A stretch of 64,000 nucleotides of DNA, taken from the NCBI GenBank assembly GCA_965112735.1, contig OZ218956.1, positions 3,038,001 to 3,102,000 of the forward strand, given 5' to 3'. The notes under the pieces are model-generated. The model was not told the DNA's origin. It ran no database searches and was given only the letters and a program-made list of their open reading frames with translations. The stretch comes from Phaeosaccion multiseriatum (lineage: Eukaryota > Protista > Ochrophyta, other classes). The position numbers and the translations under genes are program-made. Positions 2,592 through 58,276 of this stretch are shown here, piece by piece; the stretch's first letter is position 1, and each line of letters starts with the position of its first letter.

Positions 2592-4946
2592 ATCATCATG
2601 CCATTGCTATCCCCTCCCGTGGGTCTCCGTCGAAGCCCCATCCCCATCCCTCTTCCCCCTCCCCCGCTACCAGGCCGGGGCGGTCCTGCTTCTGCTGTAC
2701 CACCAACTGCTGCTGCTGCTGCTTCAGCTGCCGTCGGTGGCGGTGCTATTGGCGTTTGGTGTCCAGCGTAAGATCCGTACCTCCCTCCCCCTCCCACCCC
2801 TGAAAAAAGAGGCGGGGCGATGGGGGCGACCACCTTGCCCACCCCCCCCCCACCCCCACCGCCTTCCCTTAAGCCAATCCCAGGCGGTGGCGGCGGCGGC
2901 GGCGGAGGTGGTGGTCTCGCTTGATGGTCGTACGAGGTGTAAGGAGATGATGATGACGACGATACTGCTGCTGACAACGACGATGAAGGCATAGGAGGTG
3001 GGGGATATGATCCACCCCCACTCGCCCCCCCTCCTCTCTTGCCGCCTCTGCTGGTGGATGATCCGGGCGGCGTGGAGAAAGTGGGCGGCGGAGGTTCACT
3101 GACTCCTCCTCCTCCTCCTCCTCCTCCTCCATCACCACCCCCACCGGCTCTACTTTGGCCAAAGATAGGGGGGGAGGCACTCCGCGGTGACGTCCCTGTT
3201 GACCCCTCCACCCTTGCTCCGAAGCTCGACCCGCCCCCGCCCCCGGCACTGCGCACTGTATGGGAGCTCGGAGGAGTAGAGACCGAACCCACCCCTCCTC
3301 CGCCTCCACCACCACCACCACTACGAGCAGCCCCATTGGCCATCGACTCTCCTGTCGAGGACGGAGGAGTGGGTGTGGGAGTGGACGTGGGCAGCAGCTT
3401 GACTGGAGGAGACGGACAGGAGCCAAAGAGGGGGTTGTCGAACTGAACGAGGGGAGCCATGACTCCTCCCCGCGTGTGGGAGAACTTTTGTTGCCTCTGA
3501 TTCTGCTCCTTCATCACCTCGCTCCTTCGTTGGAGGAGGTGTTGGAACTCCTTTGTGTGGTCCTTTGCTGCTCGCTCGAGAGCCGTGGCGATGCATTGGT
3601 AGTGGATTTGCTTTTGGCTGCCCCGAGTGGGGGCCCCCTTGGCGTTTCCATTTGCGTAACTGTAGGTTTTTCGTTTGATGGATTGGTATCAAATGCATTA
3701 GGAAACACGAGAGAGACAACACAATGAAACGGAATTGGAATCAGAGAAGGAACGGAGCCATGAAAAATGCTCCTCTTGTTATCCTCCCTCCCGTCCCCCC
3801 TCCCTCTCTCTCTTCCCCTCTCCCTCCCTCCCCCCCTCCCTCCTTCTGTACCACCAACTCCCTCACCTCTGCAGTAGAGCGAGCTCCTTATGCAGCACCG
3901 CCACATCCGCCTTAAAGAAGCCCGCCACTTCGTTAATCTCCATAGTGGGATCATTGCTGTAGCCCTTGCGCCCCACCAGCTGAGACAGTCGCTCGATCTG
4001 GCGGTGAGTGAGTGAGTGAGTGAGAGAATGGGTTGAGGGAGGGAGGGATTTGAGTGAGTGAGTGAGTGAGAAAGATCACTTTAAATAAAAAACACTACAA
4101 TGTTTGCTTGCTCTCCTCTGCAGCAGCCGCCAGGCTCAGAGAGGAAAAAGAGAAAAGGAGAAAGAGTAAATGAATGACTGCCCATCGGAATTTGAAAAGA
4201 TAGATTTGCTTAAGATGTCCAGTGGCGAGCGGTAAAGCTCAGCCGTCACTGAATTGCGCAAGTTTTTCGTCATTGGCAGCATTCCTTTCCGACCCTTTCT
4301 CGTTTCGTCTCCCCTATCCACAGGCACACACTCCCCCCTCCAACTCCCCTCTCTTTGGATTAAAGGACTGCCCATCGGAATTTGAAAAGATAAGATTTGC
4401 TTAAGGTGTCCAGCGGTGAGCCGAAGCTCAGCCGTCACGGATATGTGCAAGTTTTTCGTCATTGGCAGTGCTCCTTTGCTTCCCTCTCTCTCTGTGGCAT
4501 AGCACCCGAAACACCAGCTCGACGAGCAGGAAAAAACGAGGACACCAACACTCAGCGATCGACTCGCACGGTAGGGAACTGTTAACTCGATCGATTCACA
4601 CGGTAGGGAGTTGTTTCCCATGCTGCTGGTGCTTCTGCTGCTGCCGTCGCTTCGTACTTCGTAAGGCCTCATTCCTAATGCTCAACAAAAAGGCCTCATG
4701 CACGCCGCACTTGCATATTCCCATCCACACCCATACATGCTACACAATACAATCACTTACATCCGAACGACTCCAGTAAGCACTTACCAGCTTCGCAGTG
4801 CCTTGGAAGCCAACAGCCACGCCCTCTGCCGCCTTCAGGAAGTCCCCTTGCTGCCTCAGCCGCGGCGTCGAGTTCGCAATCACCGTGCTCGGACACCCGC
4901 GCTGGAAAACCTTCACGGCCCCGCGAAACTCCGCTGTTCGATCCAT
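1591..4946 (-). CDS. STX5: Syntaxin-5/Sed5 (Qa-SNARE), 4 exons (~4946-4788, 3998-3868, 3659-2386, 1718-1591)
   Basis: N-terminal MDRTAEF peptide; Habc segments (IERLSQLVGRKGYSNDPTMEINEV; KEFQHLLQRRSEVMKEQ); SNARE motif VEKMIGELGQMFSKFSTLVAQQEETVMHIEEDV; C-terminal TM NRGMIIKIFLLLFFFIWIFTR*; GT-AG junctions keep frame. Confidence 0.9.
4178..4279 (-). ncRNA. Candidate intronic box C/D snoRNA, copy 1
   Basis: On the host-gene sense strand: CTGCC terminal stem, box C-like ATGACGA, internal CTGA (D'), box D-like CCGA, closing GGCAG. Duplicated at 4368-4468. Confidence 0.55.
4368..4468 (-). ncRNA. Candidate intronic box C/D snoRNA, copy 2
   Basis: Diverged duplicate of 4178-4279. The stem, boxes and ATCTTTTCAAATT next to box D are conserved while spacers differ. 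Confidence 0.55.
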
Positions 4947-5437
4947 AGCCTGCCCCTCTCTCTTACTATGGTTTCCCTCCTTCGTTCCTTCCCCACTCTC
5001 GAACGCTCCCTCTCCTCTTCCGCCTCCCTTTTATCTCTTCTTCTCTCTCTCCCTTCCTCAGCCTTTTCTTCTTGGACCTCCGCGATGCCGGGAGAGAAGC
5101 TCTGCCATCCTACCCGCTCTACTCTCCTCCCCTCGAGAGTCAAGACAATCTGGAGACAGATAGGAAGAGGCTATCGACCTGAAACTAAAACTGCCAGGGT
5201 GTGAACCCGCCCCCCCCAGCAAGGAGTCACTACCCACAAGAGAGAGGGGAGGGAGAGGCGTGTGTGGAAAGTGAAGGGCGTCATTATAGCTCTGTTTACT
5301 AATAGTCTGGATTTTCTTTCACCCCCCCCTTCCTTCTTTTTTCAGGAGGTTCCGCAGTAGGGTGGGAGGGAACGCCTGGCGCACCAGCAGCACCAGCAGC
5401 CCATGCAGTAATAGTAGACCGTGCAGAAGCAGTTGAA

Positions 5438-8400
5438 ATGAGCGCTCGAAGGATGTCGACGTCTCCGATGCAGCGGCTGCTTCTGCTGCTCGTGCTCTGT
5501 GCAGCGTCCGCAGCAGCAACATGGGTTCGAGGGGGAGCGCCAATAGCTGCAGCAGCAATAGCAGCGGGCGCAGTAGTAGCAGCGGGAGTAGTTGAAGCAG
5601 GAGGAGGCCGCGAAAAGCGTGGCTCAGTAGCCATGTTGGGGGAGGAGGAGCTGCAGACAGATGCCGTCGCTCTGTCGGAGGCGGGCGACATCGAGCGGGA
5701 ACACTGGCCTCGGCGCAGCCTCAGCACGGAGGGAAACCGCCTCTTGCATTTTAGTCTGGGCAGAATCAGTACTGGGGATGATGGGAATGGGCGCTGTGCT
5801 ACACGCGAAGAGCGGGAGCGTCGCCGACTAGCCCATCACGATATGCGGCACGGGAGAGGGGCGGAGGGAGCAGGCGACAGAGAGACACAGCAGGCGCAAG
5901 AGGAGCAGCAGATAGAGAAGAGAGACAGCCTGGGGTACGAACACGTCCCCGTCTTTCCTGGCTACGGAACGCACTTTGCCTACATCTATGTAGGAACCCC
6001 GCCGCAGCGAGTGAGCGTCATTCTGGACACGGGGAGTCACTTCACGGCCTTTCCATGTGTGGGGTGCAAGTGTGGTGAACACACGGATGCGTATTTCAAC
6101 CCCGACGCGTCTTCGACCATTGACCGCTTCGGCTGTGACCGCTGCCAGACCAGTTTCAAGTGCAACATCGGGTCCAAAAAGTGCTCGTACAAGCAAGGTG
6201 AGCTGTGCGTGGCACTTCGTCTGTCTGTCATTGTTGAGTCATGCGCTGTGGGTGAATGGATGGGATGTGCCGCTGGTGGTAGAAAGGGGGGGTTGGGTCC
6301 CTCCCAACAAGCTCTACATGACGCACCGCTCACCACGCCCGTCTGGGTTAGATTTCTCCATCACCAAGCCAACGAAATCCGCAACCAGCCAACCGGCCAA
6401 CACCGGCCAACCGGCCAAGTGGCTAACTCGAACTGACTTCATTTCTACTTTCCACTCTGGTGTCGCTCAGGCTACAGCGAGGGCAGCAGCTGGAATGCCT
6501 ATCAAATGAGCGACGAGCTTTGGGTCGGTCAGATTGAGCTGGATGCAGACAAGCAGCCCCCCCCGGAGCAGCGGTGGTCCGTGCCCTTCATGTTTGGCTG
6601 CATCAGCTCTCAGACGGGGCTGTTCAAGACGCAGTTAGCGGACGGCATCATGGGACTCTCGGCCAATGAGGTAGGTAGGGGCAGGCATGCTCTCGTACAC
6701 GTGGTGGTGTTGCTGTTACTGTTGCTGTTGTGTTTGTGTGGTTCGACCCCGCCCCTTTATGCGTTCCTCTCGCACGGGCTCCTCCATCCATCTATCGTAC
6801 CCTGTGGCCATGTATACTTTCCTTCCCCCCCCCCCCCTCTTCCCCCTCCCCCTCTCTTGCCCGATGCCACGTCTTTGGCTCGCAAGTGCCCTGTGTCCTC
6901 CTCTGCTGCTGCCCCCTTCTGCGTTCAAACGAACTGAAATCGTATGGTCTGCCTGCCTGCCTGCCCCTCTTCCCCCTTCCTCCCTCCCTCCCTCCGTCCC
7001 ACACTCTCTGCCTCCCTCCCTCCCTACCTACCTACCTGCCTCCGTCCCTCTCTTCCTCCCTCCTTCCCCACACCACATCAACACCACAGTACACCCTTCC
7101 ATTTCAGCTCCAAAAGTACGGCCTTTTGGACGACGTGAACTTCAGTTTGTGCTTCCACTTGGAGGGGGGAACTTTCACTGTAGGGGGGCACGAACAAACC
7201 ATTCTGCATAAAGGTAGGCAGTGAAGGTATCGTATGCTCATTCCTGTGTGTGGGGGAAGGTGTGAGCCTTTCTGTGCTTCTGCTGCTGTATCACCAACTG
7301 CTGCTGCTCCTCCCTCCCTGACGCCTGTCCTCTCTCTCTCTGTCTCTCTCTTCTCTTTTTCATTCGCTCCCGGCTGTCACCCTAACACACAACACCACTC
7401 AGCGCCGGTACAATATGTGCCTCTCGTCAAGAGTACGGGATGGTTCACCGTAGAGATGCGTGACATTCAGGTTAGTGAGGTGCAAGGGAGGGAGGGAGGG
7501 AGGCGAGGAGAGGAGGGGAGGAGGGAGGGAGGGAGGACGGGAGGGAAGGGAGGAGCTCACTAACGCACGCACTCTCGCACCGCCGCTCTAAAACAACGAG
7601 CAGATTGGAGGCGTGAGCTTGGGTGCGGATCCAAGTGTGTACAATCGCGGCAAGGGCTACATTGTGGACAGTGGGACGACGGACATGTATCTGTCGTCGG
7701 CCATCGCCACACCCTTCAAGCGCATCTTCAAGGAACAGACAAAGAGGGTGAGAGAAGGGAAGGCGAAGGGAGAGGAGGAAGAGGACAAAACGAATAGACT
7801 ATTCGCTTACCACAAGGCGTTGCTGCTTTCTGTGTTGTCTTTTGCCGCACCCCGCCGCTACTCCACTCTATCCCACTCACACTCACACAGGCGTACGCCA
7901 ACACCGTCTATAAGCTGACCAAAGAGGAGCTGGAAAAGATGCCCATCATCAGCTTTCACTTAGTCAACGACGTTGTTGTGTATGTGAAGCCAGATGCCTA
8001 CTTTGAAGCGGTGAGTGAGAGATCTCTCATGTCTATCGTCGGATGGCAGGGGTGAATACACGGGGAGGAGGAGGAGGGGCCGAGGGATGGCGGGGTGGCC
8101 AGGTGGGGGGGGGTAGGAGAGAGGGGGAGGGAGCGGTTGAAGAGGAAGTTCATCCGACCAAAGGGGTCTGACTGACTGTCTGCCTGACGGATTTCACGGG
8201 CTGGACTGACTGAACTGACTGAGTAATTGACTGGCTCGAATGACTGACTGGCTGACTGACTGACTGACTGACTAAGTGATTGACTGGCTGGAATGACCGA
8301 CTGACTGACTGACTGGCTGGACTGACTGGCTGGACTGACTTACTGACTGACTGACTTGTCCTCTTGCCCTCTCTACGCACAGGAAGAATCGGGCACTTCT

Positions 8401-8580: not shown

Positions 8581-10741
8581 GGAGGAGGAGGAGGAGGAGT
8601 GTTGGAGGAGGAGGAGGAGGAGGAGGAGGAGGAGGAGGAGGAGTTTGATGAAGTTGCGTTGCCAGCAAACCTGCCTGACCTGAGATATCTAATTCTCTTT
8701 TTCACAACTTGCACCACCCCCTCCCCCCATCCCTTTGGCGTGAAAAGGTTATTTTTGATCACGCCAATGGTCGCATTGGCTTCGCGGAAGCTGACTGCGC
8801 ATTCTCCACTCTGGGAAAGGGAACAGAGGATAAGCCCTCTTCAGCGACACCCTGCCAACTCTCCGAGTCCAAGATTGTAGTCGAAGAGTGTAACGCAGAT
8901 TGTTCGTCCGGCAATGGGTGAGTGAGTGAGTGAGTGAGTGAGAGAGTGAGTGAGTGAGTGAGTGAGTGAGTGAGTGAGTGAGTGTTCAGGGGGCGCTACT
9001 GAGGCTCCGTCCAACCACCCACCAACCCACGCACCCACCCGCCCATGCTGGCATCAATCTGCTGCCATCCCCGCCCACCCCACAGGAGCTCTGCGGAGGG
9101 CGTTGAAGTGTGGGCCTATACTGTCGTTAAGGAGGGCAGCACGGGAGCCCCTCAGTGCGATGTAGAGGCCGAGGAGCGGTCTTGCAGCAAGACATGCGGC
9201 AAAGGGGGAGGGTCAGGAGGATCAGGTGGAGGGAAGGGAGGAAACGAAGGGGAGGGGTCGATCGAGTGCGTGACCGGCCCGCGATCCATCTGCTCCGTGA
9301 GCTGTGAACAGTCGCGCGTAGAGGTGGTGTGGGCCGGAGGGGGCGTTGATAGAACAAAGTCGTGCAGCACGAGATTGGCCAAGAGGACGTGCCATACGGC
9401 GCTGTGCGGGGCGTCGAAGATTGGGCTTGTTTTGGAGGTGGACCTCCGATTGGCGATGAAGAAGATGGACCGGAGGCTCGAGGAGGAGGAGAAGGAGGAG
9501 GGAATGGAAGCAGAGGATCAACACGTGAAGGAGGATGAGGCAAAGGAGAAGGAGGTGGAGACTGGAGAGGAGGTTGAACAGCCGGCCGAGGAAAAAGAGG
9601 AGGAGGAGGAGGAGGAGGAGGAGGAGGAGGAGGATGTTGGGAGTGAGATGCAGGTCCAGGCCACACCGGCGAAGCATCAGCTCATGGGCTCCGGGGACGG
9701 GAACCTCGCCGCGAGTGAGTGAAACCCGTTTTTGTTGTTGCTTGGTCAGAGCTGCGAAAGGGGTTGAGTGAGGGCCGAAAAACACACTTGGGGATCGATC
9801 ACACTCGTTGGAATGGCTTCCCTCCCAGGCCCGCTCATTGCTATGATCACCTCCGCACCATTTAAGGGGTTGAAACCACGCCACCGACCCTGACCCTCCT
9901 GCCCCCTCCCCCCTCCCCCCCCACAAACACACACACACTCTCTCTCTCAGGCTTGCCGTGGACGCAGGTGATGAGCGACTCCCTCGGGGACGCCATTGCC
10001 CGCTACACCAACGTGTTTCCTGGCGACGTGCTAGTCACACTTGACGAGTCCGCGGAGCACCAGGGCAGCGTCGTGACTCACGCCCTTGCTGTCAAAGTAC
10101 ACCTCACTCCCAAGGTAAGGCTCTGTGTGGTGCTGTGCGGTGTGGTGTGGGCACTGCATTGTTAAGCGTTATCAACGGTGCGGTATCATGCGTTGTCAAT
10201 CGTTGGCAATGTCACTACGTGTGTGGCTCCCTTCGCCCCCGTCTGTCCTCGGCTCCCAAAAGCAGCAGTTGGTGATACAGCAGCGAGCGCCGGAAGTTGT
10301 TGGCGGTGTATTTGTTCCTGCTTTGTTTTGATTGGGGAAAGGAGGGGTATGGCTTCGAGGCTCGCACCTACGCTCAAATCGCATCTCAAAGGAAAAGAAG
10401 ATGGTGAAATATTGTCAAGGACATAAGGTTGTACTCACTGCCCCCCCTTCCCTTAACTCTGCCTACCCCCCCTCCCTCTCTTGCAGATTGACAGCGCTGA
10501 GGCAGCCCGAGTGTCTGGTCTTCTGATGGCCCCGCTGACCACCCCTCTGCTGGCAGAGCTCGGGAAGGAGCAGTCAGGAGCTTTCGATTTGCCGGGTATC
10601 AAGGTGAGAGAGAGAGAGCCCCCTGGGTCGGAGAGTCCCCCTGGGCTTCGGTCCACCCCGTACGCTCTTTTGGTCAGTCACTTCGCAGGAGGACATCTGC
10701 TGACTCCCTCTTTCCCTCCCCCTCCCCCCTCCCTCCCTCCC

Positions 10742-10789: not shown

Positions 10790-11729
10790 CTCTTCCTCTC
10801 TCCTTCCCTCCCTCCCTCCCTCCCTCCCTCCTTCCCTCCCTCCCTCTTTCCCTCTTTCCCTCTCTCTCTCTGTGTGTATTGCCCTCCCTCAGATTGTTGG
10901 CATCGAGACCGATGGGGATGTGAAGATCCTCACCGCCTTTGACCGCCAGGAGTACATGCATGCCCATTCTGGCGAAAACAGCGTCACTCCCGTCACTCCC
11001 ATTTTATCCTATCCCGCCGACAGCAGCGGCGCCACGTTCGGAAAGCTCTTCGGACGTGCGGTTCTCATCTTTACGTGCGTTGTTACGGTGGTGTGGGTCA
11101 TACTTTTGGGGCGAAAGCGACTTCGGAGGGGGAGAGGGGGCGACACTTTCGATGGCAGCCTAACGAGGAGCATGGGAGTGGGTGGGCTGGAGAACGGTCT
11201 TGGGTCATCGTCGGCTAGGGCTCGAGCAAAGGCAGGAGGAGGAGGAGGAGGCGGAGACAAGGGAGACTATCAAATGGTGAACGTCGCGTCAGACGATCAG
11301 GGAGAGGGGGGCACGCTGCTCAGTGGGCGGGTAATGGACAAGTCCAAGAAATCGAACCCTCATCTGCAGCAGACGGGTGAACAGGACACAAGGAGCTTGA
11401 GGGAGGGGAGCGGGGGTGGCGGCTCGGGAGAGCACATGGGGGAAGGTAGCGGGGACGGCCAGGTGAGAGAGAGGGGGCCTGATTGCTTCTTTTCACACCT
11501 TCCTGAATTATTCTTCTCCACTCTCGTTGCTGCTGTATTACCAACTGCTGTGCTGCTGGTGATGGTGGTCCTCTGGTCCTCCCTCTTTCGCCTTCCTCGC
11601 GTTGTCTCTCTCTCTCTCTCTCACTTCGCCACCTTTCTTCTTATCACATGTTTCTTCCCCTCCTTTCCCTGTTGGCAACAGGGCAACTCGTCAAGGAGAA
11701 GCAAAGTACGCCGCTTCATCAACCTCTAG
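5438..11729 (+). CDS. Membrane-anchored A1 aspartic protease, plasmepsin V/ASP5-like; multi-exon
   Basis: Signal peptide MQRLLLLLVLCAASAAA; YIYVGTPPQRVSVILDTGSHFTAFPCVGCKCGEH; FGCISSQTGLFKTQLADGIMGLS; second catalytic motif IVDSGTT (~7665); GVLGANFMMNHN/VIFDHANGRIGFAEADC; Cys-rich extension; TM AVLIFTCVVTVVWVILLG followed by RKRLRR. Confidence 0.85.
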
Positions 11730-12218: not shown

Positions 12219-15076
12219 ATGATGTACCGCTCCAGCATTGCGTTCCTGGCCATGCTGGCGGTGGCCATGGCCTTCGCCCCGTCGGCTCTCCTGGCAAGCC
12301 AACGGAGGCTGCAGGGCGGTGTGGGCAGCGGCAGCGGTCGGTCCTCTTCCTACAGGGGCAGCTCGGCGCTCAACATGTCACTCGAAGACCTTGAGAAGCG
12401 GCTGGCGGAGAAGGACGCAGCACAAGTACCGAAGGTAACGATAGGTGGGGTGCGTGGCCCATGTTTTCCCTGTGTGATTTGCCTTGGGCTCTTTTGTGTG
12501 AAAGGGTGACACGTCGAAGGTGTGTGACGTGTGGGTAATGTGTCTGGCTCATGTCACGTGTTTCTCCTCTGGTAGGCCCTGCTTGTGGCCGTGCTATAGT
12601 GCACAATCGCACCGAAACTCTTGCGTTTGCTGCTTGTACTTTTGCTGAGTATTTTAGCTGAGCCCTCACCTCTCTCGTGCCTCTCTCTCTCTCCTCTCTC
12701 CTCTCCCCCCCCCCCCCCCTCTCTCTCTCGCTCTCTCTCTCCTTCCTCGTCCCCCTCTTGTTGTTTTCCTTGTTTTCTTTGCATCTGGGACCTCCTCTCT
12801 TTCGCGTGCCTTGGTGCGGGCCTTACAACTAAAAGGGAGGGAAGGCTTCTAAGGCTCCTAAGGCTACTGCCCCTGCCACTGCCCCTAAGGCGGCTGCCCC
12901 TGCCCCTGCCCCTAAGGCGGCTTCCTTTGGGTTTGGGAAGAAGGCCCCTGCGCCGGCCCCTGCCCCTGTAGTGATCCCTGCTCCCGCCCCCCCCGCACCT
13001 GTCGTCAAGGCCAAGTCCTCATCAGGTGAGAGAGGAAAGGAAGAGAAATAGGAGGAGGAGAGAAGGAGGAGGAGAGAAGGAGGGGGAGGAGGAGGAGCAG
13101 GAAGAGGAGGAGCAGGAAAGAAGCGTATCATATGACTCCGGCGGGGGACAGCCGAGCGAGCGAGGAGGATAGTGGAGATGTGTCAATGAAGATCAAGTGG
13201 CTGCGGTATCGCTGCGCGCGTAGACGCAGCAGTTGTGGAACGGCAGCAGAAGCTCGGCAGGCAAGAGAGTGCCGAGGCCTGAAGCAAGAATGCGACCGGG
13301 CCAAACAGCAGTGATGGAGGGGTTGCCTTCCGTGTGTCTGGAAGTGGAGCTGCGATGGTCTGAAGAAGAGCACGGCCAGCAGCAGCAGGGGGAGGAGGCT
13401 GAAGAGGGGGGGGGGGTGAGCAGAGCAGCAGCAGCAGCAGCAGCATAGTGTTTGCTACGAAGAGGGGGGATGAGCAGAGCAGCAGCAGTAGCAGTAGTAG
13501 CATTGCTTGGTCAAGGGTTGTGTTGCAGGGGGTCGTCGTGGAGGGAGGCAAAGGGCGGCGGCCAGCCAGTGTTGGCGCAAGGAGCACGGCTGTACCACCA
13601 ACAGCAGTGGCCGTGACGCCCTTTGCAGAGGGGTGTTTCTTCCCCTCCTCTTCCGTCCCTTCCCAACTGCACTCAAGGGCGTGTGCGTGTGTGTGTGGAC
13701 ATGTACGCTTTCACATGACAGGCACACACGCGTGCGTGGCGTTTGGTTTGTCGCTTGTCTCCTGCCGCTCCCTCGGAAGCACTCTGCTTTACCTACCTGG
13801 CGGCTCTATCCCCCTCTCACTCGGTCCCTGCCTCCGTCCTGTCCTCCCTCCCTTCCTTCCGTCCCCCTCTGGCTGCAATCACTCCCCCCTCCTCCGTTCC
13901 AGAGGGCGGAAACTTCGTGGTGCCTGGAGTGGCCCTCGGTGCACTTCCCTGGATTGTGGCTCCGGTGGCGGCCCTGGCTGCTGTGCGGCCCATCCTCGCT
14001 AAGGTGTGTGTGTTTGTGTGTGTGTGTGCGTTTGTGTGTGTATATGTGTGTGTGATCACGTTACCACGTCAGGTCATCAACTTTGCTCGGTTTGCTGGAC
14101 CCTTGCCGGTTGGTGCCCGAGACGGCGATTCTAACCCCTGAACTCTCTTCTCGTGTGGTGTCCTCCTCCTCCTCCTCCTCCTCCTCCTCCTCCTCCTCCT
14201 CCTCCTCCTCCCCTCCTCCTCCTCCTTCTCCTCCTCCTCTTTCTCCTCCTCCTCCTCCTCCTCCTCCTCCTCCTCCCTTCTCTTGTGATGGAACCGAAAG
14301 GGAGCCGCAGCGCGAGCGGAGGCAGCACGAGCTGCGGAGGAGAAGGCAGCGAAGGAGGCGGCCATGGCAGCAGCGTCGGGCCTCAATGGGCAGGACAAGA
14401 GTGCCCTCACCGTTGTAGGTGCGTAGAAGAGAGGGAGACAATGAAGGAGAGAGAGATAGAGACAGACAAGACAGACAGGCAGACACAAAACACACACGCA
14501 CACACATACACACACACAATGAGAGGGAGGAGAGCGGGGGCAGGCAGGAGGCGGGGTGAGCGAACATCTCCTCCCTCTCCTTCCTTGTCTTTTGCGCTCT
14601 CCATCCGAAGCAAGCTCTCCACTCCCCGCCCCTCCCCGCAGCTTTGTGCCCACTGACTTACTGACTTACTGCTTGTCACGTTGCTTTTCGTGCTGATGTC
14701 GTTCCCTTGTCTCGTTGCCTTTCCTTTCCCTCCCTTCCCTCCTCTATGCACAAACACTTTCTATGCATGTCCACACATACATACCTGCCAGGCGGACTCC
14801 TGGCCACCGCCATCGGTGGTCTGCTGCTCCAGCCCCTCCTGTTCGGAGGAGGAGGTGCCCCTAAGCCCCCCACCCCCCCCGCAGCGCCCGCTGTGAGCAG
14901 GCCCAAGGTTGTCGCCCCTGCCCCTGCCCCTGCCCCCGCCGCGCCCGTAGGTAAGTCAATGAATGACTCCAGGGGGAGGAGTGGGAAAGAGGCTTTTGAT
15001 TAGGATTCTGGAGTGCAATGACCAGCATTGAAGGGGGGGGGGGGCACTTTGGCGATACTGGGGCGTGGGTGTGTGT

Positions 15077-16031: not shown

Positions 16032-17016
16032 GTCAGCAATGAAGAGGAGGAGACGAGAGGAGAGGAGTATTTATTGGTTGCTTCGGTCAAGGGCAGCAGC
16101 ACAAGTTGGTGATACAGCAGCAGCGTCGTACAGTGGGGGAGGGGGCGGGGGGGGGGGGCTAGTTCGCCCTCGGTGGAGAGAGTGAGGGATAGAGATAGAA
16201 AAGGAGAGACTCGGGAGGAGAGGGAAGGTGAGCTTTTCATTTACCGGACGGAGTATATTTAGGCGTATGCAAGAGCGAAGAAGCGTTTACTTTCATTTTT
16301 TTTTACTTGACACAAACGATGATTAATGGTATAGAGTAGAGTTGCTGACTCTCCTCCCCTTCTTTCTGACTCCTGTACGACGTTAGGAAGAAATGATTGA
16401 GGGGTGCTATAGTCCGCTGCTTCCCCTTCCCTCGTTCATCACATATCTTTACTCAATTTTTTTATTAAAATCATATTTTCTAATTTAAGTTATTACACAT
16501 AGAAAAGAGGAAGGAACCCCGAGCCCCCCGTTTGCGTTGCCACATCACAGCACCATTGTACTTCCAACGTGCCTGAAGCAAAAGCCCTCCCTCGAGTGTC
16601 AACCACAACACAAAAACAGACAGAACAAACACAACGACTACAGTAATAGACACCGCAACAAAAGAAAGAAAAAGCCTCCTCGCCTCTTGTATCGAAGCCT
16701 GTGCCCTCTCTCTCTCTTTCGAGGCTTCTATCGCATCGTGCGATAGCATAGGCTTTCTCTCTCTCTCTCTCTCTCGGCTCCCTCCCCTTCCCCTCCGGCC
16801 CTCCTCCATCTCGAGGGCTCTCTTCACGGTCCTATCCCGTCTTAGATATCATTTCGCTTCCTCATCGCAATATCCCCCCTCCCCCTCCGCCCCCCTTTTC
16901 CAGCTCCCTCCTCTTCCCTTCACTACCCTCCTTCCCAGCAGCCTAGCATTCGGTCGCTGACGCATTCGGTCGCTGACGCCCCAATCTGCCTCGATACCGC
17001 AGACTCACACCTTGTC

Positions 17017-17399: not shown

Positions 17400-17434
<35 letters not shown>

Positions 17435-17858: not shown

Positions 17859-17890
<32 letters not shown>

Positions 17891-25978: not shown

Positions 25979-26042
<64 letters not shown>

Positions 26043-27089
26043 GTGTGTGTGTTTGTGTGTGTGTGCGTACGTGTGCGTGTGTGTGTGCGCGCGTTTCGCT
26101 GTGCCGACCTCTTCGTACTCGCTTTTGTCTGATCAACTCTCCTCCTCCTTTTGACTCAACTGTTGTTCTCATTGTTGTTGTTGCTGTTGTTGCTGCTGTT
26201 GCTCTTGTTGTTGCTGCTGTTATTGTTGTTGTGGGGTCGGATGGTGCGTTGCTTCGCTTCTCCTCCTTCTGCCTCGTTCCGTATCACCAACTCCTGCTGC
26301 AGGCCGCCAAGCTTGTGGTGTGGGCTCTGGAGCTCCTTAAACCCACTCCAGAGATGCACGACTGGTGCAAAGCTGCCCTTGCCGAGTGGGAAGCACTCGG
26401 ACTTGGAGCACAACAAGGTATCCAAGGAGGGAGGCGAGGAGGGTTTCCGAATCGAGGAGCTGGAGGAGGAGGAGGAGGAGGAGGAGTGAGGAAGCCCAGC
26501 AAGATCACACGAGCCTCCGTTTCCGCTTCTAGGAAGAAGAGTGAACAAACGGAAGCAACCCCAGAAGGAAGACTGGTGAGTGTATTGTGTGCCTGCGTGC
26601 ATCCGTGGGTGCGTTTGTACGTGCGTGTGCGTGCGCGTACATCCGACCTCCTCTCCCGCCCCCCCGCACCAGTCCCTCCTTTAGCCCGCCGCACTCTCAC
26701 ACACACCCATACCCACACCCATACCCCTGCTTTCATCTCTTGTCACCTCTCTCTCTGTCGCTCCTCCCCACTCACTCTCTGTCTCTCTCTCTTCATTCTT
26801 TCTCATTCTCTATGTATACCTCTCTCTGTCGCTCCTCCCCACTCTCTCTCTGCCTCTCTCTCTTCATTCTTTCTCATTCTCGATCTATGTATACCTCTCT
26901 CTGCCGCTCCTCCCCACTCTCTCTCTGCCTCTCTCTCTTCATTCTTTCTCATTCTCGATCTATGTATACCTCTCTCCTCCCCTTTCTTTTTCTATACCTT
27001 TCTCTTTCGCCTCTTGCTTCTACAGCTCTACAAGTCGCTGCATGTCGTGAACGGTGGACGGGGCGGCATGCTCGTCACCCTGTTCGACC

Positions 27090-27137
<48 letters not shown>

Positions 27138-30586: not shown

Positions 30587-30617
<31 letters not shown>

Positions 30618-36802: not shown

Positions 36803-39800
36803 ATGCCCGGTCTAAGACGGCAACGGCCACTCATCATGTCAGCATGGCCCGCGCTACTCGTGCTGCTGGGGCTGGTTTGCTCACAAGCAAAGAACCCCTC
36901 CGCCACAGCTCTCAATTTAAGAGCGTTGGTCAATAATGGTCGCAGCAGCAGCAGCAGCAGCAGAAGCAGCACAGCAGCACAGCAGCACCCAGAGACGCTC
37001 ACAACGGGTCTCTTAGTAGGTAGTCACGTCGCCAAACTGCGCGGCGGGGCGTCATCAGGGGGCAGCGGGGGCGCAATATCACAGACGCAAAAGGAGAAGT
37101 TGTTTGAGGCGTATAATGAGCTGCACTCACTTGCTCAGGTATGTGGCGTGTGAGTGGGGTGACAAGGAGAGTGTCTGTGGCGTGTAGTCAGATGAGACGG
37201 TGTAGATGATGGTGCAACACACGCGCTTTCTCTCTGTTGCAGAGATGCTAATGCGGGGGGGCTGTGCCTGGCCTCTTCTTGCTCACGGCCTGTCGAGGGA
37301 GACAGACAGACAGGGGGGTGGGGAAGAGACTGTCTTTGGGTTTCTAGATGAGCCAAACAGAAAACACCACAGACACACTGGCGGACACTGACCGTCCCTC
37401 CTGCCCCCCCCCCCTTCTCTCTCTCTCCTCTCTCTGGCAGAACTTCCACAAGCCCTTCGACTCTCCCGCTGTGCTTGTCGTCGGGCAGCAAAGCAGCGGA
37501 AAGTCCGCCCTGATTGAGGCCCTGATGGGGTTCCAATTTAACCAAGTTGGGGGAGGGACGAAGACGCGGAGACCCATCGCCCTCCGCATGCAATACAACC
37601 CCGGTAAGACTCATGAATTATAATTATAATGACTTAAGCGTGATGACGATCCAAGACGCGAACGAAGTCAGAGGGTCGGAGCTGGGGAGAGAGGAGGGGA
37701 AGGAGGAGGAGAGAAGAGGGAAGAGGGCCACTCGAAGGAGCACCGTTGGTGTGGATCCGAAGCTCGCAATAGTGTCCGTGGGGGAAGGGGTTCTGGACCT
37801 CACCTCCAACTCAGGACTGCTATTGCTGTGCTGTACCTCTAACCGCTGCTGCTGTACTCTCCTTTCGTCTCCTCTGCTTTGTCCGATGGCGGCGGTCACT
37901 GCCCTCCTCCCCCTGCTGTGGCCGTTTGGTTATACTACACAACAGACTACGACCACCCGAAGTGCTACTTGACCACGGACAGCGGTAAGGAAGAGGAGCG
38001 CACACTGGCACAGATCCAAGACTACATTGAGGTGAGAAGCCGTACAACAGACGAGTGAACGGGCTCTGCAGTGCGAGAAGGGGGAATGGGCTCTGGAGTG
38101 TTCGCATCCACGGCTACTCTGCTGCATTCTCACTCTCTTCTTTCTCCCACCCGTCTCCCCCCCCCCCCCCCCCCCCCCCCCTCTCTCTCTCTAACCCTCC
38201 CTCGTTCCTGCGCTCTTCGCCAGTCGGAAAACCGCCGACTCGAGCGAGACCCCAGCCGCTGCTTCGATCCCAGGGAGATCGTGGTGCGAGTCGAGTACCG
38301 ATTCTGCCCCAACATGATCCTCATCGACACTCCGGGCCTCATCCAAGCCCCCCGGGGGAAGCACCTCAACCCGGAGCAGCTCAGTTTGGCCAATGTAAGA
38401 GGGCGTGGTGGGGGTGTGTGTGGGTGTGTGGGTGTGTGTGTGGGTGTGTGTGTGTGTGTGTGTGTGTGTGTACCCACCTCCGCTCACCCTCTCCTCTGAT
38501 GTCTCCATTGAAGTCGAAGCTGAACTGTATCCCTCGCAGTTGATGCTCTGCCTTTGTGTAACTGCCGTGGTCGGTTACCATGTGTCCCTTCCTTCTCTTA
38601 TCTCTTTTGATACCTGAACTAAGACTCCACTCCACTTCACTTTATACCACTGACAAGGCGTCATACTCACATTCCCCACTCCGTCGTTTGGATTTCTTAT
38701 CCTCAACCAAATTAACTCCAACCAAACCACAAATGAAATTAAATGTCACACTCACCACCACACAACCAACAAAAGGCGGCGAGAGAGGCAGAGCAGCTGG
38801 TGATTGAGAAGATGCGTTGCCAAGACTACATTGTGCTCTGCGTGGAGGACACGGCGGACTGGAAACACGCCTCCACCCGTAACACCGTCATGAAAGTCGA
38901 CCCCATGCTGGAGCGAACAGTGCTGGTGACCACCAAACTGGACACCAAACTCCCCCAATTCGGCTCCTCTGTGGACCTGGAAGACTTCCTTTCGGCCCCT
39001 GTTGTGGAGAGCCTGTACCCGCAGATGCTGGGCGGGCCGTACTTTACAACGGTGCCGTCAGGAAGGGTGGGGAGAGCGCCAGACTCTGAGTTCTTCAGCA
39101 ACGCAGCATTTGTGCAGGTGTGTATGGTGATGGCAGTGGATGGAGGGGAGGGACGGCAATGGGTGGTGATGGCATGGTATAAAGTATCGGTCTTTGTGTA
39201 GGGGTTCGCTTAACATAACATGGTATGGTTTCGTTAAACGTACTAACATGATATGGCTTCTGCGCCCTGTCCCTACCTGCCCCCTTCGTCGGTTTAGGCA
39301 TGCCGGAGAGGAGAGGGGAAGGACAGCGCCTACGTCAGCACGAAGCTCGGAAAGGGCAAGGCACAAGGTCTGCTCCCCAACATTGGAATCTCTAGGTGCG
39401 TTCTTCCTTCCTTCCTTCCTTCTTTCCATCGAATGATGGAATTGCCGTGAGAGGCGTTCCAATGAATTCCTGAATGGCCTTGAGGCGTCCAGGCCAGCTC
39501 GGATGCCTTATTGGCATGTTTGGTATCATGGGTGATTATAGTAGTGTTTCTTCTTACCCCTCGCCGCGGCTCGCTTTCGATTTGTTACTTGCCTTTTCTT
39601 CCCTTCCCTTGTCTTGCCTGCACTCATTCATTTCTAACGGCATTGTACTTGCTGCCCCGTGTGTAAATCTGTCCCACCACCTACCTTCTCACCTACCTCC
39701 CCCGTACCCACCTACCTACCTACCTATCCACCATTCTACCCACCCTCAGACTGCGAAAGTTCCTGGAGACTCGTGTGGAGGAGTGCTACAGGAAGAACGT

Positions 39801-46535: not shown

Positions 46536-46761
46536 GGCGAGAAAAATATTTCCTTCCACTCCCCCTTCCTTCTCCTTCTAGGCCGCTGCTGTTATTACAC
46601 AGACTTCGATCATAATGTGAAAAAAGAAGGGAGACGCCAGGTTGGATCACCAACTGCCAAAGGTGTACCTCTTTTTTTTTTGCTGTCTCTCCCATCTCCC
46701 ATCCCATCCATGGGCCTTCGTTGGTACATCCAGAAGAAGAGTAGCCCTTCTACCTTCTGTG

Positions 46762-49728: not shown

Positions 49729-49785
<57 letters not shown>

Positions 49786-51625
49786 CTCTCTCTTGTCTCT
49801 GTCCAGGCCTTTCTCTTCTCTTTCTCTTTCTCTCTTTACTTACAATACATTATGTACACACACACATATATATTTTTTGTATTTATGTACTTGGTTTCAT
49901 GTATCTCTGGTCTGGTTGGGGTCGGCGCAGGTGATGAGGGGGACCAACCCAAGCCTGGTGGAGCGCTTCCACGGCTTTCGTCGCGTGGGGCAGTTCGGGC
50001 AGTGGGTGGCGTGTTTCACGGTGGCGTTTCACTTCCTCTTCTGGCGCTTCCTTGACTGGCTCTCTCCCGCTGAGGATATTGACATCGGTGAGAAGATGGG
50101 CACGTTCATTTGTTGGCGTATTTGTGATTGTTGACACGTTTACACCAATTCAGTGGTGTGTTGTAGTAGTGGAGTTGTTTGTCATAGTGTTTGTTGTTGG
50201 CTGGTTTGATCAATTGTTTGTTTGTTTATGTGTTTGTTTGCTTGTTTGTCTCCTTCCTTCCTTCCTTCCTTCCTTCCTTCCTTCCTCTCTTCTCCCTTCT
50301 CCTCCTTTGCAGTTGTGTTGTTGTCCTCTTCATCCTTCCCGCCGTTTTGAACTTCTCCTCACTCACTCCCTCACTGAACGAACGAAGGCTCACTCCCTCG
50401 CTTCCTCCCTTACTCACTCACTCACTCATTCACTCACCCACTCACTCACTTACTCACCCACACATTCACTCACTCACTCTCTCACTCCCCGACTCACTCC
50501 CCCACTCAACTCATCACCCACTTACTCACTCACCCACTCACGCACTCCTCCTTCTCACTCATCCACTCACTTCTTCCCTCCCTCCCTCGCTCACTCACTC
50601 ACTCACTCACTCACTCACTCACTCACTCACTCACTCACTCACGCTATCACTCTCTCACTCACGCTACCACTCTCTCACTCACTCACTCACTCACTCACTC
50701 TCTCACTCACTCACTCACTCACTCACTCACTCTCTCACTCACTCTCTCACTCACTTAGTCACTCACTCACTCACTCACTCACTCACTCACTCACTCACTC
50801 ACTCTCTCACTCACTTAGTCACTCACTCACTCACTCACTCACTTACTCTCTCACTCACTCACTCTCTCACTCACTTAGTCACTCACTCACTCTCTCTCAC
50901 TCACTCACTCACTCACTCACTTAGTCACTCTCTCACTCACTCACTCACTCACTCTCTCACTCACTTTGTCTCTCACTCACTCACTCACTCACTCACTTAG
51001 TCACTCATCACTCACTCACTCACTCACTCACTCTCTCACTCACCTACTCAGTCACTCACTCACTCACTCACTCACTCACTTACTCACTCACTCTCTCCCT
51101 CACTTACTCACTCACTCACTCACTCACTCTCTCACTCACTTCGTCACTCACTCACTCACTCACTCACTCTCTCACTCACTTAGTCACTCACTCACTCACT
51201 CACTCTCTCACTCACTTAGTCACTCACTCTCTCACTCACTTAGTCACTCACTCACTCACTCACTCACTTCCGTAGAACGCACTGTGTATCGTTACCCATC
51301 TCTCTCCGTGTGTTCTCAAGGGCCTGCTGCACTGCCCTGTGCTGTATCATCAACTGCTGCACTACCCTGTGCGGTGTGTCCCGTCATTCCGACTCACACC
51401 CCTTTACACTCGCTGGTCTTCATTTCCCTCCCTCCCTCCCTCCCTCCCTCTCTCCCTCCCTCTCTCCTTCCTTCCCTCCCTCCCTTCCACCCCTCTTCAG
51501 CACCAGACTTCCCTTCGCCAGAAGAGATGCGGGGCAGCGCAGCCAAACAGACATCGGCGGCAGCGAGAGAAGAGGACGCAGCTGTGCCCTTCGGCTCCGC
51601 GAAGGAAGGCACTTATGCTGCTTGA
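46762..51625 (+). CDS. PIGA: Phosphatidylinositol N-acetylglucosaminyltransferase subunit A (GPI biosynthesis); multi-exon
   Basis: [61 protein letters not shown]; IPNAVD; [14 protein letters not shown]; [22 protein letters not shown]; [12 protein letters not shown]; [14 protein letters not shown]. Confidence 0.95.
50360..51268 (+). repeat. ~0.9-kb degenerate (TCAC)n microsatellite in last PIG-A intron
   Basis: Directly visible tandem tcac units with interspersed ttagtc variants. Confidence 0.9.
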
Positions 51626-51897
51626 CACCTTGCTTGACATTGCGCTTGACACAGCGCTTGAGGAGCCCTTTCCTTTCCGGACTCAATCAGTCAATCGACG
51701 TCTGCCCCCATCCGCCACGCCCGACTTGGACATTCAAGGGGCGACCGGGCAGGGCAGGGCAGTTGGTGATACAGGGCAGGGGGGGCACCACTACTTCCGC
51801 CCTTTGACCCAACAGATAGTGGAAGGGATTCGTCGATTTACCGTCCTTGCCCCTCGCAGTCGGGTAGGGAGAAGAGTGGGTACAGCAGAGAGCGAGC

Positions 51898-51939: not shown

Positions 51940-52579
51940 AAGACAGAGGGCGACAAAGGGACAGAAAGACACAGCGCGATGTTCACTTCAACGCCTCGCC
52001 TGGCCTCGGGTTGGCAGGGGGGGGTTGCGTGTGTGCGTGCGTGCGTACGCCCTCAGGCTGTACTTGGTGTCAGGTTGCGCACGGCTCACGCCGCGGCCAC
52101 GCAGGCAGCGCCTCTGTGTACACATCAGGTCCGTCGGCAGTCGTCAGTTGGTAATCGACAGTCGGCAGTTGTCAGTCGTCGGTCGGCTCTTCAGGAGTGG
52201 ACCCCAAAGGCTATACGGTTAGGTCGAGAGGGGTTGTCGTGCTGGCTGTGTCTAGCCAGTGCCACTTTACGGTGCTTACTGCAAGGGGTGTCAGGGGTGT
52301 CAGGACTCACAGTGCCACCGTTCGCCCCCTACGTGATGCCAAGTAGGTGGGTGGTTGGCGTTTCTATCATCCCTTGTCGCCATCAAGGGCCGTCATCATC
52401 CTCATCATCATCAAGAGCGGCAGCCACAAGCAGTTGGTGATTCGGTTGCAGAAGCAGCAGCAGCAGCAGCGGCAGCGCGAGATGGAGGATAGACTCCACC
52501 ACCAAGCCGCAGACCCACAGAGGAGCAGACCATCAACAATGACAAGAGACACAGAGCGGAGACAGAAAGGAGGAGGCAG

Positions 52580-53092: not shown

Positions 53093-53253
53093 AGCCCAAC
53101 CACCGGCATGAGCTCTGTAGTCGTATGCACCACAAAGAGCGACATACGTATATATGCAAGCTTTGATTTTATCTTGTATACATACGTTGGAGCTTTCCCG
53201 TTTACGGGGCAAGCCCGCTCCTTCTAACGTGCCTACTACTTGTAACCGACTTG

Positions 53254-54817: not shown

Positions 54818-55730
54818 GCTCCCTTCCCATGCCCGTGCCGATTGGAGAAAGTGTACGTTAACAGCTCCAAAGTCATCGCGTGATCCTCGTTGCACGAAGC
54901 CCCATACCCTCCACCTCCTCCCGTGAATGGTAACACGAAGCGTTTCGTTGGATCATCCTCTGCTGGTGGTGCTCGTGTTCGCCCTCGTCGTCGTCGTCGT
55001 CGTCGTCCTTCTGCTGTTGGTTCTTCACCTTCCTGAAGGCTCCCTACCGGCGACGATCGTGAAGTAGCAAGACCCTCACACATGCTCACTTCATCGGCAA
55101 AGCCCACGTGCACATGTGAGCCCAGGCTCAGGAGAGCTCGTGTTGCATTCTCTGTCCACCATCCCCTCCCTACCTCCTCCTCTTCCTCCTCCTCTTCCTC
55201 CTCCTCCTCCTCTTCCTCCTCCTCCTCCTCCTCCTCCTCCTCCTCCTCCTCCTCCTCCTCCTCCTCCTCCTCCTCCTCCTCCTCCTCCTCCTCCTCCTCC
55301 TCCTCCTCCTCCTCCTCCTCCTCCTTTCCCCCCCCCTCCTCTTCCTCCTCCCCCCCCCCCCCCCTCCTCCTCCTCCTCCTCCTCCCCCGCCGCCTCTTGC
55401 ACCCTGCAGGCGATGGTACACTCGGCGTGAAGAGCGCCCCCCCTGGAGCTCGTAGAACAAGAAGAAGAACAACAACAACAAGAACAAGAACGAGACGGTG
55501 GCGAAGATGAAGACGGTAGGACGACGAGCACCTCAGAGATACGATCGGGCTCTGATTGTTGGAGCGCCGTGCTGGACAGTGTCACGACTCGCACAAGAGC
55601 ATCGAGCGTACTCTGCTGCTCTTCATGTGACTGCCGCTGCCTCAGGCCCCACCCCCGCCCCCGACCCTGCTCCTGCCCCTCCCCCTCCAAGAGGCCCAAG
55701 CCGAGAAAGATGGCGGCGAAGTGGTGTCCG

Positions 55731-55763
<33 letters not shown>

Positions 55764-58276
55764 AAAGAAGAAGAAGAAGAAGAAGAAGAAGAAGGACTGT
55801 TGCTATTGTCCTTCCCTCCTTCTTCACCGGGTCGACCGAACAAGAAAAGTTGGTCGCTATTTCCCTTCGCAGTCCTCCCACCCCGCGACCGTTCCACCCG
55901 CTGCTTCTCACACGTTTCGCACCACTGCTGCCCTTCGCACCCGTTCACCTCCTCCCTCTCGTCCCGTAGCCTGGCCAAGTGACGTTGTCGTCGCAGTTGG
56001 CTCTCCTTCTGTAACCGCCTCTGCTTCCGGCGATAAAGGGTCTCACCAAGCCAATTCGTCGGCACTCCTCCTGTCCCCGAACGAGTCCGCGTGGATGTGC
56101 TGAAGATACTTGCTCCGCTGAGGCTGCTGTGCGCACTACACCCCACCTCTGAGTCGTCAATCGTGCCGGCCCCTGACCCTCCCCGATTCACATCTCGAAC
56201 TGACTTGGCACTGTATCGATCTCTACCTCCTACACCTCCTGGCCTTTCTCCCGTTGCCGGCACCCTCTCGTTCCTCTGCACTTGCACGTGCCCCTCCACC
56301 TTCAATTCACCACTGGCTAGAGTCATCACCTGGCGTATGCCCCGCCGGTCTACGAGGCCTCCGTTCCCCAGCCCGAAGTGCACGTGCACAAAGCCAAAGA
56401 AGTTCTCTCTGATCGCGAGAGGGAGGAAACTAGGCAGAGCCCTGCCTTTGTCTCTGCGGCGGAGGAGAAGAGGTGCTCTTCCTCTACCTCTTTTGGGAGG
56501 GATCCGATCTGCTGCCGACCCGTTTCTCAGCCTCTGCTCCTCCTGCTGTATCACCAACTGCTCCTGTTGCTGCTGCTCCTGCTGCCGCTTCTGTTGCTGC
56601 TGCTGCTTCTTCTGATGCTGCTGCTGCCGCGGCGGTCGGTGCCCCGGTGACCGCCGCTTCCACGACTTGACCTGGTCTCGCGGCCACGCCATCACAGAAT
56701 CATTGGCTGTAATCTTTTGCAGCTCCTCCTCAGCCTTCTCTCTCATCGCCTTTCTAATCGCCTCTCTCGAGCAAGGCAGGCATGTGGCACGAATCATGCT
56801 AGAGTCATACAGATTTGCAGTGGCGTCGTCTGCGTCCTGAGCTGGCTCTTGCGCTTCTTTGAGGAAGAAGTGCTTTGGCTTGTATGCAGCAATCAGCGCA
56901 GCCGTACCGCTGGGAGTGCTGGCCAGCTCATACAGCGGAGTAGTCTCCTCCTCCTCCTCCTCCTTCTCCTCCTCCTCCCCCCCCCCCCCCCCCCCCTCCT
57001 CCTCCTCCTCCTCCTTCTCCTCCTCCTCCTCCTCCTCCTCCTCCTCGTCCGCCTCCTCCTCCTCCTCCTCCTCGTCCGCCTCCTCCTCCTCCTCCTCCTC
57101 CTCCTCCTCCTCCTCCTCCTCCTCCTCCTCCTCCTCCTCCTCCTCCTCCTCCTCCTCCTCCTCCTCCTCGTCCCCCGCCGCCCGCTGGTGCTGCCGAGGC
57201 TGTCCCTCGTTGCCGTGCCTGCTGGTTGGGCCATCCGTGACGGTAGCGTTGAAGCGGATGACTAGGCCCCCCTTGGGACGCGGACTCTGGAGGAAGGATT
57301 CGGTCCTGCTGCCGCCATCGACTAAACTAAAATCGCTCTTCTTCCGGCTGCTTCTGCTCCAGCCTGACCCACGCGCTGTCTCTAAGACAGGAGGGCCGCA
57401 TGGGGACGAGGGATTTACCAGTGTGACTTCCGATCGCTCTTCCTCAAACTCCGTCGTAGGCACCACCTTGGAGTCTCGTAGAGCACTGTTACTCTCTCGC
57501 ATCCACTTACGGAGCTTGCTAAAGCTTTGTTGGCGCCCCCCTCCTCTTCCGCTCTCAGAGGGAAAAGCTGATTGAAATGCCAGTCCTCCTGAGTCATCAC
57601 ATTGCTCCAGGTAATCGGCGCGGTGCGGTGTCCTTGGGGACTCCGCACGCCACTGCCGTCCACCCCCCCCTCCACTCCTCCCTCCTTCCTCTTTTCCCTC
57701 CTCCTGTTCCTTCTCATGCCCCTCCTCCACCTCTTCCTTCTCCTGCCCCTCCTCCTTCTCCTCCTCCTGCTCGTCTTCCTCCTCCTCCTCCTCCTCCTCC
57801 TCCTCCTCCTCCTCCTCCTCCTCCTCCTTTTCCTCCTCATCCTCATCCTCTTGTTCCTCCTCCTCCTCCTCATCCTCCCCTGTCTGGTGCTGCTGCTGTT
57901 GCGGGCGCGCCAAATGTGCGGTTATCCCAGGAGAAAGGCGGGGCGAAGAACCTGAAGCGGCAAGCACAATGCCGACGGAAGAAGTAGATGAAGTGTGTAG
58001 GTTCTGCGACTTGGTCTGTGTGCCTGCATGAGAAAGCAACTGACTTTCCTCCCCCATTGCCTGCTGCGGCTGAGCTTCACTCTCCTCATCACCAAGGGGG
58101 GGGAGTAAGCGCGGCTGCTGGCCCCTTTGCTGTGACTGTCGCCCCTGGTACTGCGGAGAGACTCCCCCTCCTCTTGATAGGGAAAAGTTGCTGCCCCATC
58201 CACTGTCCCTTGTCGCTCCTTCCCCGCCCATCAAGGCCGAGGCAGGTTGGAGCGAAGGCGCGGACATGATCAGCAA
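53740..58276 (-). CDS. Large low-complexity hypothetical protein, probably one gene with apparent frameshift(s) inside GAG/G-runs
   Basis: The 1061-aa and 457-aa ORFs abut at ~55100. Non-repetitive segments (ENFFGFVHVHFG, RVFSTVVVGTTDVLEAL, FYVFRGT) look protein-like, but no family is recognised. Confidence 0.5.

Follow-up and report, generated by a model that had tools for sequence, protein, structure and literature searches.

The core of human hypervariable minisatellites described by Jeffreys (GGGCAGGAXG) is a word of 10–15 nucleotides found at many dispersed, repeat-embedded loci that share no flanking sequence. A word of 14 bases with comparable behavior, AGTTGGTG(A/G)TACAG, recurs in a stretch of 64,000 nucleotides from the ochrophyte alga Phaeosaccion multiseriatum (contig OZ218956.1, positions 3,038,001 to 3,102,000), referred to here as the window and numbered from its first base. 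Some loci are tandem here too, with a period of ∼18 nt in contigs from elsewhere in the genome and of 28 nt for a second word, GATGGCAGTGGATGG. In contrast to the Jeffreys core, however, the algal copies are mostly solitary and nearly invariant, and lie in triplet microsatellites and coding loops.

Several other systems share part of this behavior. Rickettsia palindromic elements and bacterial REP-type repeats are also short and dispersed and are found in frame within genes, where they add a few residues to tolerant regions, but the former are 100–150 nt long and the latter are palindromic hairpins, whereas the algal word is 14–23 nt, non-palindromic and unstructured and belongs to the nuclear genome of a eukaryote. 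HIP1 of cyanobacteria, DNA uptake sequences and Chi resemble it in being over-represented by orders of magnitude in all compartments of the genome; HIP1, however, is an 8-bp palindrome, uptake sequences and Chi belong to bacterial machinery and have a replication-tied strand bias, and none of the three is embedded in microsatellites. Drosophila mini-me elements and the microsatellite flanking repeats of Lepidoptera couple a conserved unique core to microsatellite-forming shoulders at many loci, as the algal word does, but with cores of tens to hundreds of nt that are regarded as similar to miniature inverted-repeat transposable elements or short interspersed nuclear elements, whereas only 14 nt are conserved in the alga and there is no element body. 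Polymerase-theta templated insertion and ectopic micro-gene-conversion copy 3–30 nt via microhomology, without target site duplications (TSDs) or terminal inverted repeats (TIRs) and in an orientation fixed by homology. Known events of this kind differ in using nearby, locus-specific templates and in making no genome-wide family, and we know of no self-amplifying version of either. Set against these systems, the algal word is best regarded as a short dispersed repeat and not as belonging to any of the named families.

Abundance and anatomy of the 14-base word

Scanning both strands of the window with the form AGTTGGTGRTACAG recovered 12 exact copies, the number given in the original prediction, as compared with none in 100 dinucleotide-preserving shuffles and 0.0005–0.006 expected under Markov models from order 1 to order 5, whether or not the motif copies were left in the training sequence. 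Allowing up to two mismatches gave 23 matches where 0.61 would be expected. These include all seven one-mismatch copies noted previously (11533-, 13590-, 23165+, 23333+, 26279-, 27901-, and 51342-) and four matches with two mismatches (23080-, 39669-, 46642-, and 52432+), the last two being the weaker copies that had been placed near 46643 and 52431. The coordinates first assigned to the minus-strand copies were correct, whereas plus-strand copies start one base later than had been listed (10267, 16104, 24598, 27135, 29375, 31975, and 51761). Three-mismatch matches number seven against ∼7.4 by chance, so that this class is fully explained by chance, and the chance-corrected counts for zero to three mismatches are 12, 7, ∼3.4, and ∼0. 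The window thus holds about 22 real copies, 12, 7, and ∼3–4 of them at zero, one, and two mismatches, respectively. All matches with up to two mismatches are listed below; ORF denotes an open reading frame, and the cytochrome P450 and PIGA genes, the long ORFs and the contig pile-up are described further on.

2695..2708, minus strand: exact, G variant, bordering an (AGC)5 run
3846..3859, minus strand: exact, G variant, outside a CAG tract, with G-rich flanks
7286..7299, minus strand: exact, A variant, CAG repeats on both sides
10267..10280, plus strand: exact, A variant, in otherwise unique DNA, only the GCAGC and CAGC shoulders being shared
11533..11546, minus strand: one mismatch
13590..13603, minus strand: one mismatch, G variant, non-CAG context
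16104..16117, plus strand: exact, A variant, within a short CAG tract
23080..23093, minus strand: two mismatches, 85 nt from the next copy
23165..23178, plus strand: one mismatch, directly 3′ of (GCA)8
23333..23346, plus strand: one mismatch
24598..24611, plus strand: exact, G variant, non-CAG context
26279..26292, minus strand: one mismatch, plainly non-coding, in a microsatellite read-through ORF
27135..27148, plus strand: exact, G variant, at the 3′ edge of a perfect (CAG)15, non-coding
27901..27914, minus strand: one mismatch, antisense within the 919-aa acidic ORF, read AVPPTA
29375..29388, plus strand: exact, sense within the 919-aa acidic ORF, read GVGDTA; site of the contig pile-up
31267..31280, minus strand: exact, sense in a cytochrome P450 exon, read AVGDT
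31975..31988, plus strand: exact, antisense to the P450 gene, intron positions −21 to −8
39669..39682, minus strand: two mismatches, probably a chance match, no shared shoulders
46642..46655, minus strand: two mismatches, ∼300 nt upstream of the first mapped PIGA exon
51342..51355, minus strand: one mismatch, flanked by a 16–19-nt direct repeat (17/19 identical)
51761..51774, plus strand: exact, within a (GGGCA)n repeat whose phase is kept (fits net +12 nt)
52432..52445, plus strand: two mismatches, beside a CAG tract
56546..56559, minus strand: exact, sense within a 1061-aa low-complexity ORF, 55091–58276(-), read QLVIQ

The enrichment is more than 2000-fold over both the Markov and the shuffle nulls, and the vast over-representation originally proposed holds in the window against Markov models up to order 5. 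An unbiased k-mer survey ranked the 14-mer first among non-simple dispersed words at k = 11, 12, and 14. Exact copies occur once per 5 kb and real copies once per 3 kb, or roughly one per gene. Every copy in the window is solitary, the closest spacings being 85–168 nt. The single-base variants are transition-biased, and an old, decayed tail was not seen in the mismatch spectrum; the copies are therefore young, turned over, or homogenised.

The 14 core positions each carry 1.3–2.2 bits of information, and the sole frequent core variant is at position 9, with A in 16 copies and G in 6. Upstream of the core is a shoulder of CAG periodicity reaching out to about −10 (0.5–1.1 bits), and downstream a weaker CAGCAG, past which nothing is conserved, giving the extended consensus (CAG)n-C-AGTTGGTGRTACAG-CAGCAG. 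Within the window the 9-mer core TTGGTGRTA and the left 8-mer AGTTGGTG were never seen outside full copies, and the other half-words of the 14-mer occur outside full copies at or below chance. As half-words are not enriched, there is no series of truncated copies and the unit is all-or-none.

The word is non-palindromic, as first noted, and neither strand folds into a hairpin better than shuffled sequence does. The earlier statement that it lacks a longer flank and a TIR was also borne out. No TIR or shared element body was found in the aligned flanks and per-position information of the window copies, and no parent element is present in the window. Flanking direct repeats in TSD register (score ≥4) accompany 43% of copies and 39% of controls anchored on GC...CAG, a signal not above that of the matched control; the AG or CAG that bounds each copy at either end belongs to the word. 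Suggestive flanking direct repeats are seen at two loci, 51342 (17/19 identical) and 24598 (10/13). Where the phase of the surrounding repeat is readable it is kept, as in (GCA)n at 31267 and (GGGCA)n at 51761, which fits a net gain of 12 nt (9 nt + CAG, or 10 nt + AG), the unit being seen as AG-TTGGTGRTAC-AG.

Contigs from three runs of one sample and one run of a second sample from another study, all of which look like DNA, were compared over 26200–32100. Contig depth rises ∼30-fold above the single-copy level exactly at 29375–29392, where dozens of contigs per run diverge directly on both sides. To the left these loose ends have a CAG repeat as their consensus and to the right a weak AGCAG, with nothing longer. 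The pile-up and its divergent loose ends therefore establish the word as genuine, genome-wide, and without a longer common flank. Contigs from elsewhere in the genome carry degenerate copies head-to-tail, with a period of ∼18 nt or after a 23-nt spacer, and some loci are therefore small tandem arrays.

Triplet tracts, gene contexts and lineage distribution

Whenever a copy adjoins a triplet tract, it is found on the strand that reads CAG and never on the one that reads CTG. The motif-strand flanks are 60% purine, with 18 of the 22 informative copies biased in this direction and 4 in the opposite one (Wilcoxon p ∼5e-4), and the bias holds at ±30, 60, and 120 nt and after removal of CAG runs. 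The word had been considered orientation-independent and often flanked by CAG/CTG triplets. It does occur in both orientations relative to genes, and triplet flanks are usual, but its orientation follows the local CAG or purine strand and the flanking triplets are of one strand only.

A second over-represented word, GATGGCAGTGGATGG, is found at three dispersed loci (39129–39143, 48450–48505, and 60117–60271), always within GGGA-type G-rich repeats; at 60090–60292 it forms a 28-bp minisatellite of ∼6 units. The CAG-associated word is therefore not the only case of a complex word riding on a single class of simple repeat.

One gene context is a cytochrome P450 gene on the minus strand (30641–33102), which is ∼47% identical to its brown-algal orthologues and whose exons were placed by tblastn with these orthologues, Pfam, and solved structures. 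The copy at 31267 lies in exon 31967..30641 as (GCA)3 GTT GGT GAT ACA (GCA)5, in the middle of a low-complexity stretch of ∼70 residues between the conserved segments ‘...VIEG’ and ‘HFIPKG’; this stretch is missing from all five aligned orthologues, Ectocarpus, Pylaiella, and Tribonema among them. The last exon contains three lineage-specific low-complexity insertions in all (poly-Gly of ∼27 aa, ∼70 aa, and ∼35 aa), which are in frame and stop-free and therefore most likely translated. An in-frame intron around the 31267 copy is less likely: the only GT..AG pair that could plausibly restore the conserved frame has a weak GTCATT donor. The antisense copy at 31975 lies near the 3′ end of intron 32283..31968 (GTGAGA...CCCTCAG), which was placed on the model of the orthologues, in which ‘...NPLR’ continues into ‘RFCFFLPFW’.

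Two further copies, one on each strand, are located in the 919-aa ORF at 27516–30272(+). Its predicted product is highly acidic with recurring Y-x-D-E-x-F motifs, and the segment 28364–28846 is an 18-nt coding minisatellite, (AEAKAA)n ×27, in one frame. No Pfam family was found for this ORF; its motifs and single-frame repeat make it look like a real protein. The 494-aa ‘ORF’ at 25814–27298, on the other hand, reads through (GT)n and other repeats, and the copies at 26279 and 27135 are therefore non-coding. Coding-potential scoring of the remaining copies was uninformative, the codon bias of the genome being too weak. The PIGA gene (GPI-anchor GlcNAc transferase), at 46950–50095(+), has at least seven exons, and no copy of the 14-mer is found in the six PIGA introns. 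PIGA adjoins a transaldolase gene in Ectocarpus and in a Logan contig. The best relatives of a PIGA exon and the P450 are from Phaeothamnion, Ectocarpus, Discosporangium, Pylaiella, and Tribonema, at ∼40–75% identity, which places the alga among the ochrophyte stramenopiles, close to the brown algae but not within them.

The predicted occurrence in exons, introns, and flanks and on both gene strands is thus confirmed by the P450 exon (sense), the P450 intron (antisense), the 919-aa ORF (both), and non-coding DNA. Presence in exon, intron, and non-coding DNA in both orientations argues for an origin at the DNA level rather than a protein or RNA function, in line with the DNA-level action suggested initially.

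The 14-mer is lineage-specific. With up to one mismatch it is absent from five loci of related algae totaling ∼94 kb, in which 25–30 copies would be expected at the density of the window; of this DNA, 30 kb is from Ectocarpus and 23 kb, with 20 CAG tracts, from Tribonema. Nor was the 23-mer consensus matched by any JGI metagenome contig. A scan of viral contigs with an 18-mer gave 26 hits, 20 of them in one AT-rich phage gene family, two in another common context, and four isolated. The 20 related AT-rich phage contigs (IMG/VR) carry the 18-mer GCAGTTGGTGATACAGCA in one conserved gene. A viral origin was rejected, since no viral hit has CAG flanks and the match to GCAGTTGGTGATACAGCA is a coincidence with the algal word rather than kinship. 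Neither strand of the 14-mer, nor variants in a relevant context, was found in the literature searched, and keyword searches gave no relevant result. There are no Rfam or tRNA hits in the window, and partial resemblances of 7–9 nt seen by eye to the tRNA D-arm/A-box, the U6 ACAGAGA region, 18S rRNA, and Chi were dismissed as numerology.

Possible explanations for the word

Point-mutation bias cannot multiply a 14-mer; the copies therefore arise by copying of at least 12–23 nt, or are preserved by selection after such copying. The explanation we favor, tentatively and as something short of probable, is that the word is a lineage-specific micro-insertion of net +12 nt, recently spread or homogenised by DNA-level copying between purine-rich triplet tracts. 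Existing copies would act as donors, the unit being written into (C)AG-containing, purine-rich, low-complexity DNA, mostly CAG/GCA tracts, in the orientation of the tract. The likeliest route would be copying primed by homology or microhomology while break-prone triplet repeats are being repaired or replicated, in the form of ectopic micro-gene-conversion or templated insertion via the GCAGC/CAGC shoulders, and each new copy would become a further donor. Copies would be tolerated in disordered protein loops, introns, and spacers; because its length leaves the triplet phase intact, the unit can persist in exons, to which it adds four codons (AVGDT, AVPPT, or QLVIQ). Coupling to CAG shoulders, co-orientation with the purine strand, in-phase length, the young spectrum, tandem arrays, and the parallel case of GATGGCAGTGGATGG all fit copy-and-paste via triplet shoulders. 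The sequence itself shows that the 14-mer is real and abundant, and shows its anatomy, contexts, co-orientation, and lineage specificity; the copying mechanism and a selfish or neutral, rather than functional, status are what we infer.

Several observations weigh against this explanation. Only 10–11 of 79 CAG-class tracts carry the 14-mer, and the CTG-rich zinc-finger gene region at 17–20 kb, with more than 20 triplet tracts, has none; the ORF there, 17017–18609(-), encodes three WRKY19-type zinc fingers (Pfam PF24906) and lies in very CTG-rich DNA. About one-third of the copies lie in non-CAG, mostly G-rich DNA with 14-mer boundaries that are equally sharp, a pattern easier to reconcile with a defined inserted unit or a selected site than with copying between random end points, and in these copies only AG and CAG could serve as microhomology. 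There are no partial copies, the mismatch spectrum is likewise compatible in shape with purifying selection acting on a functional site, and neither an empty site nor a donor nor a polymorphism was observed. Two alternatives, a binding site and a mini-element, are kept alive by the sharp boundaries outside CAG DNA, the lack of partial copies, and the fact that most CAG tracts are without the word.

The first of these, the idea of a recognition signal in the original prediction, is that the word is a putative genome-wide binding site of a multi-Myb or multi-zinc-finger protein (a chromatin organiser, insulator, or recombination signal) kept by selection. Although we regard this as rather unlikely, it would account for the sharp boundaries with a single tolerated variable position, the lack of decayed copies, the missing transposon hallmarks, and a spacing of about one copy per 3–5 kb, or roughly one per gene. 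The CAGTTG within the word also matches CNGTTR, which we take to be the generic Myb site. Copies lie, however, in coding exons, at the 3′ end of an intron, in flanks on either side of genes (5′ and 3′), and in junk DNA, without a consistent position or orientation relative to the few verifiable genes. Moreover, embedding in triplet repeats and co-orientation with the purine strand are not expected of a binding site, and the unrelated GATGGCAGTGGATGG behaves alike in its own repeats. The young, all-or-none spectrum and the placement in coding low-complexity sequence fit a copied micro-insertion at least as well as a recognition signal.

Alternatively, the word could be a defined mini-element or the scar of dedicated machinery, either a short non-autonomous insertion with AG/CAG duplication or the constant footprint of transposon or recombinase excision. 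The constant and complete unit (AG-10 nt-AG or CAG-9 nt-CAG), present even in non-CAG DNA, the single long direct repeats at 51342 and 24598, and the young copy spectrum would be consistent with this. Against it, a TIR, a longer body, and a 5′-truncated series were not found, the window holds no parent element, and the frequency of flanking direct repeats is close to that of the GC...CAG-anchored controls. Excision footprints, furthermore, are usually heterogeneous, and palindromic for TIR elements, whereas the word is neither. We regard a mini-element or scar as unlikely.

Several possibilities are excluded by the data: the remnant of a classical transposon or retroposon, an element that forms a hairpin, a family of introns, and a protein motif. 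A transposon remnant is ruled out by the lack of TIR, body, and partial copies and by a TSD statistic equal to that of the anchored control, and 3′ ends of non-long-terminal-repeat retroposons by the absence of graded 5′-truncated copies and of enriched half-words. Introner elements are not compatible with copies of 14–23 nt, one of which is in frame in an exon and another only part of a 316-nt intron. A palindromic word of the HIP1 type is ruled out by the non-palindromic sequence and the lack of a stable hairpin on either strand. Nor do the copies form ordered pairs delimiting elements: strand runs number 15 where 12.5 are expected, which is not unusual, and the inner flanks of candidate pairs share nothing.

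An RNA-level signal, such as a branch-point/polypyrimidine or acceptor module of related introns with the exonic copies as by-products, would suit the copy at −21 to −8 of the verified GT..AG intron and the ACAG that ends the canonical strand. It is very unlikely in view of both orientations occurring within single ORFs, copies in exons and in junk DNA that does not look transcribed, six PIGA introns without copies, and the absence of an Rfam hit in the window. An adapter, barcode, assembly, or base-calling artefact has a negligible probability and is already refuted, as far as the reads reach, by the presence of the word inside contigs of four runs, two samples, and two studies, in frame within a conserved gene, and with transition-biased single-base variants.

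It is conceivable, if somewhat doubtful, that the word is a self-amplifying 12-nt micro-insertion spread purely by templated triplet-repeat repair, writing four codons into many proteins, or the binding site of an undescribed algal chromatin organiser; either would be a genome-wide DNA word of a kind so far undescribed in eukaryotes. If the density of the window holds genome-wide, the alga would carry thousands of near-identical copies with no transposon anatomy, some of them translated. Spread by copying would then represent a route of sequence dispersal that is neither classical transposition nor point-mutation bias, and would show how low-complexity protein loops gain complex residues. In practical terms the word is a ready-made lineage marker, and it confounds assembly, microsatellite genotyping, and motif discovery in this genome.

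Other repeats in the window

The window is 58% G+C and has an extreme microsatellite load, with 142 Tandem Repeats Finder rows in 64 kb. Simple repeats dominate its intergenic DNA and part of its coding DNA, and some are very long: (CTCA) ×221 at 50389–51268, (AGG) ×175 at 52568–53094, and (TCC) ×86 at 54526–54783. In the ORF of a PPR protein at 128–1396(+), the 35-aa repeats are also an array at the DNA level (246–1429; 105-nt period, 11 copies, 82% identity), which suggests that the array was recently expanded or homogenised. Repeats of 31–32 nt (GCCGATAGCGGATAGCGC...) at 34863–35581 occur in direct orientation and, ∼500 nt away, inverted, and may constitute an inverted-repeat element.

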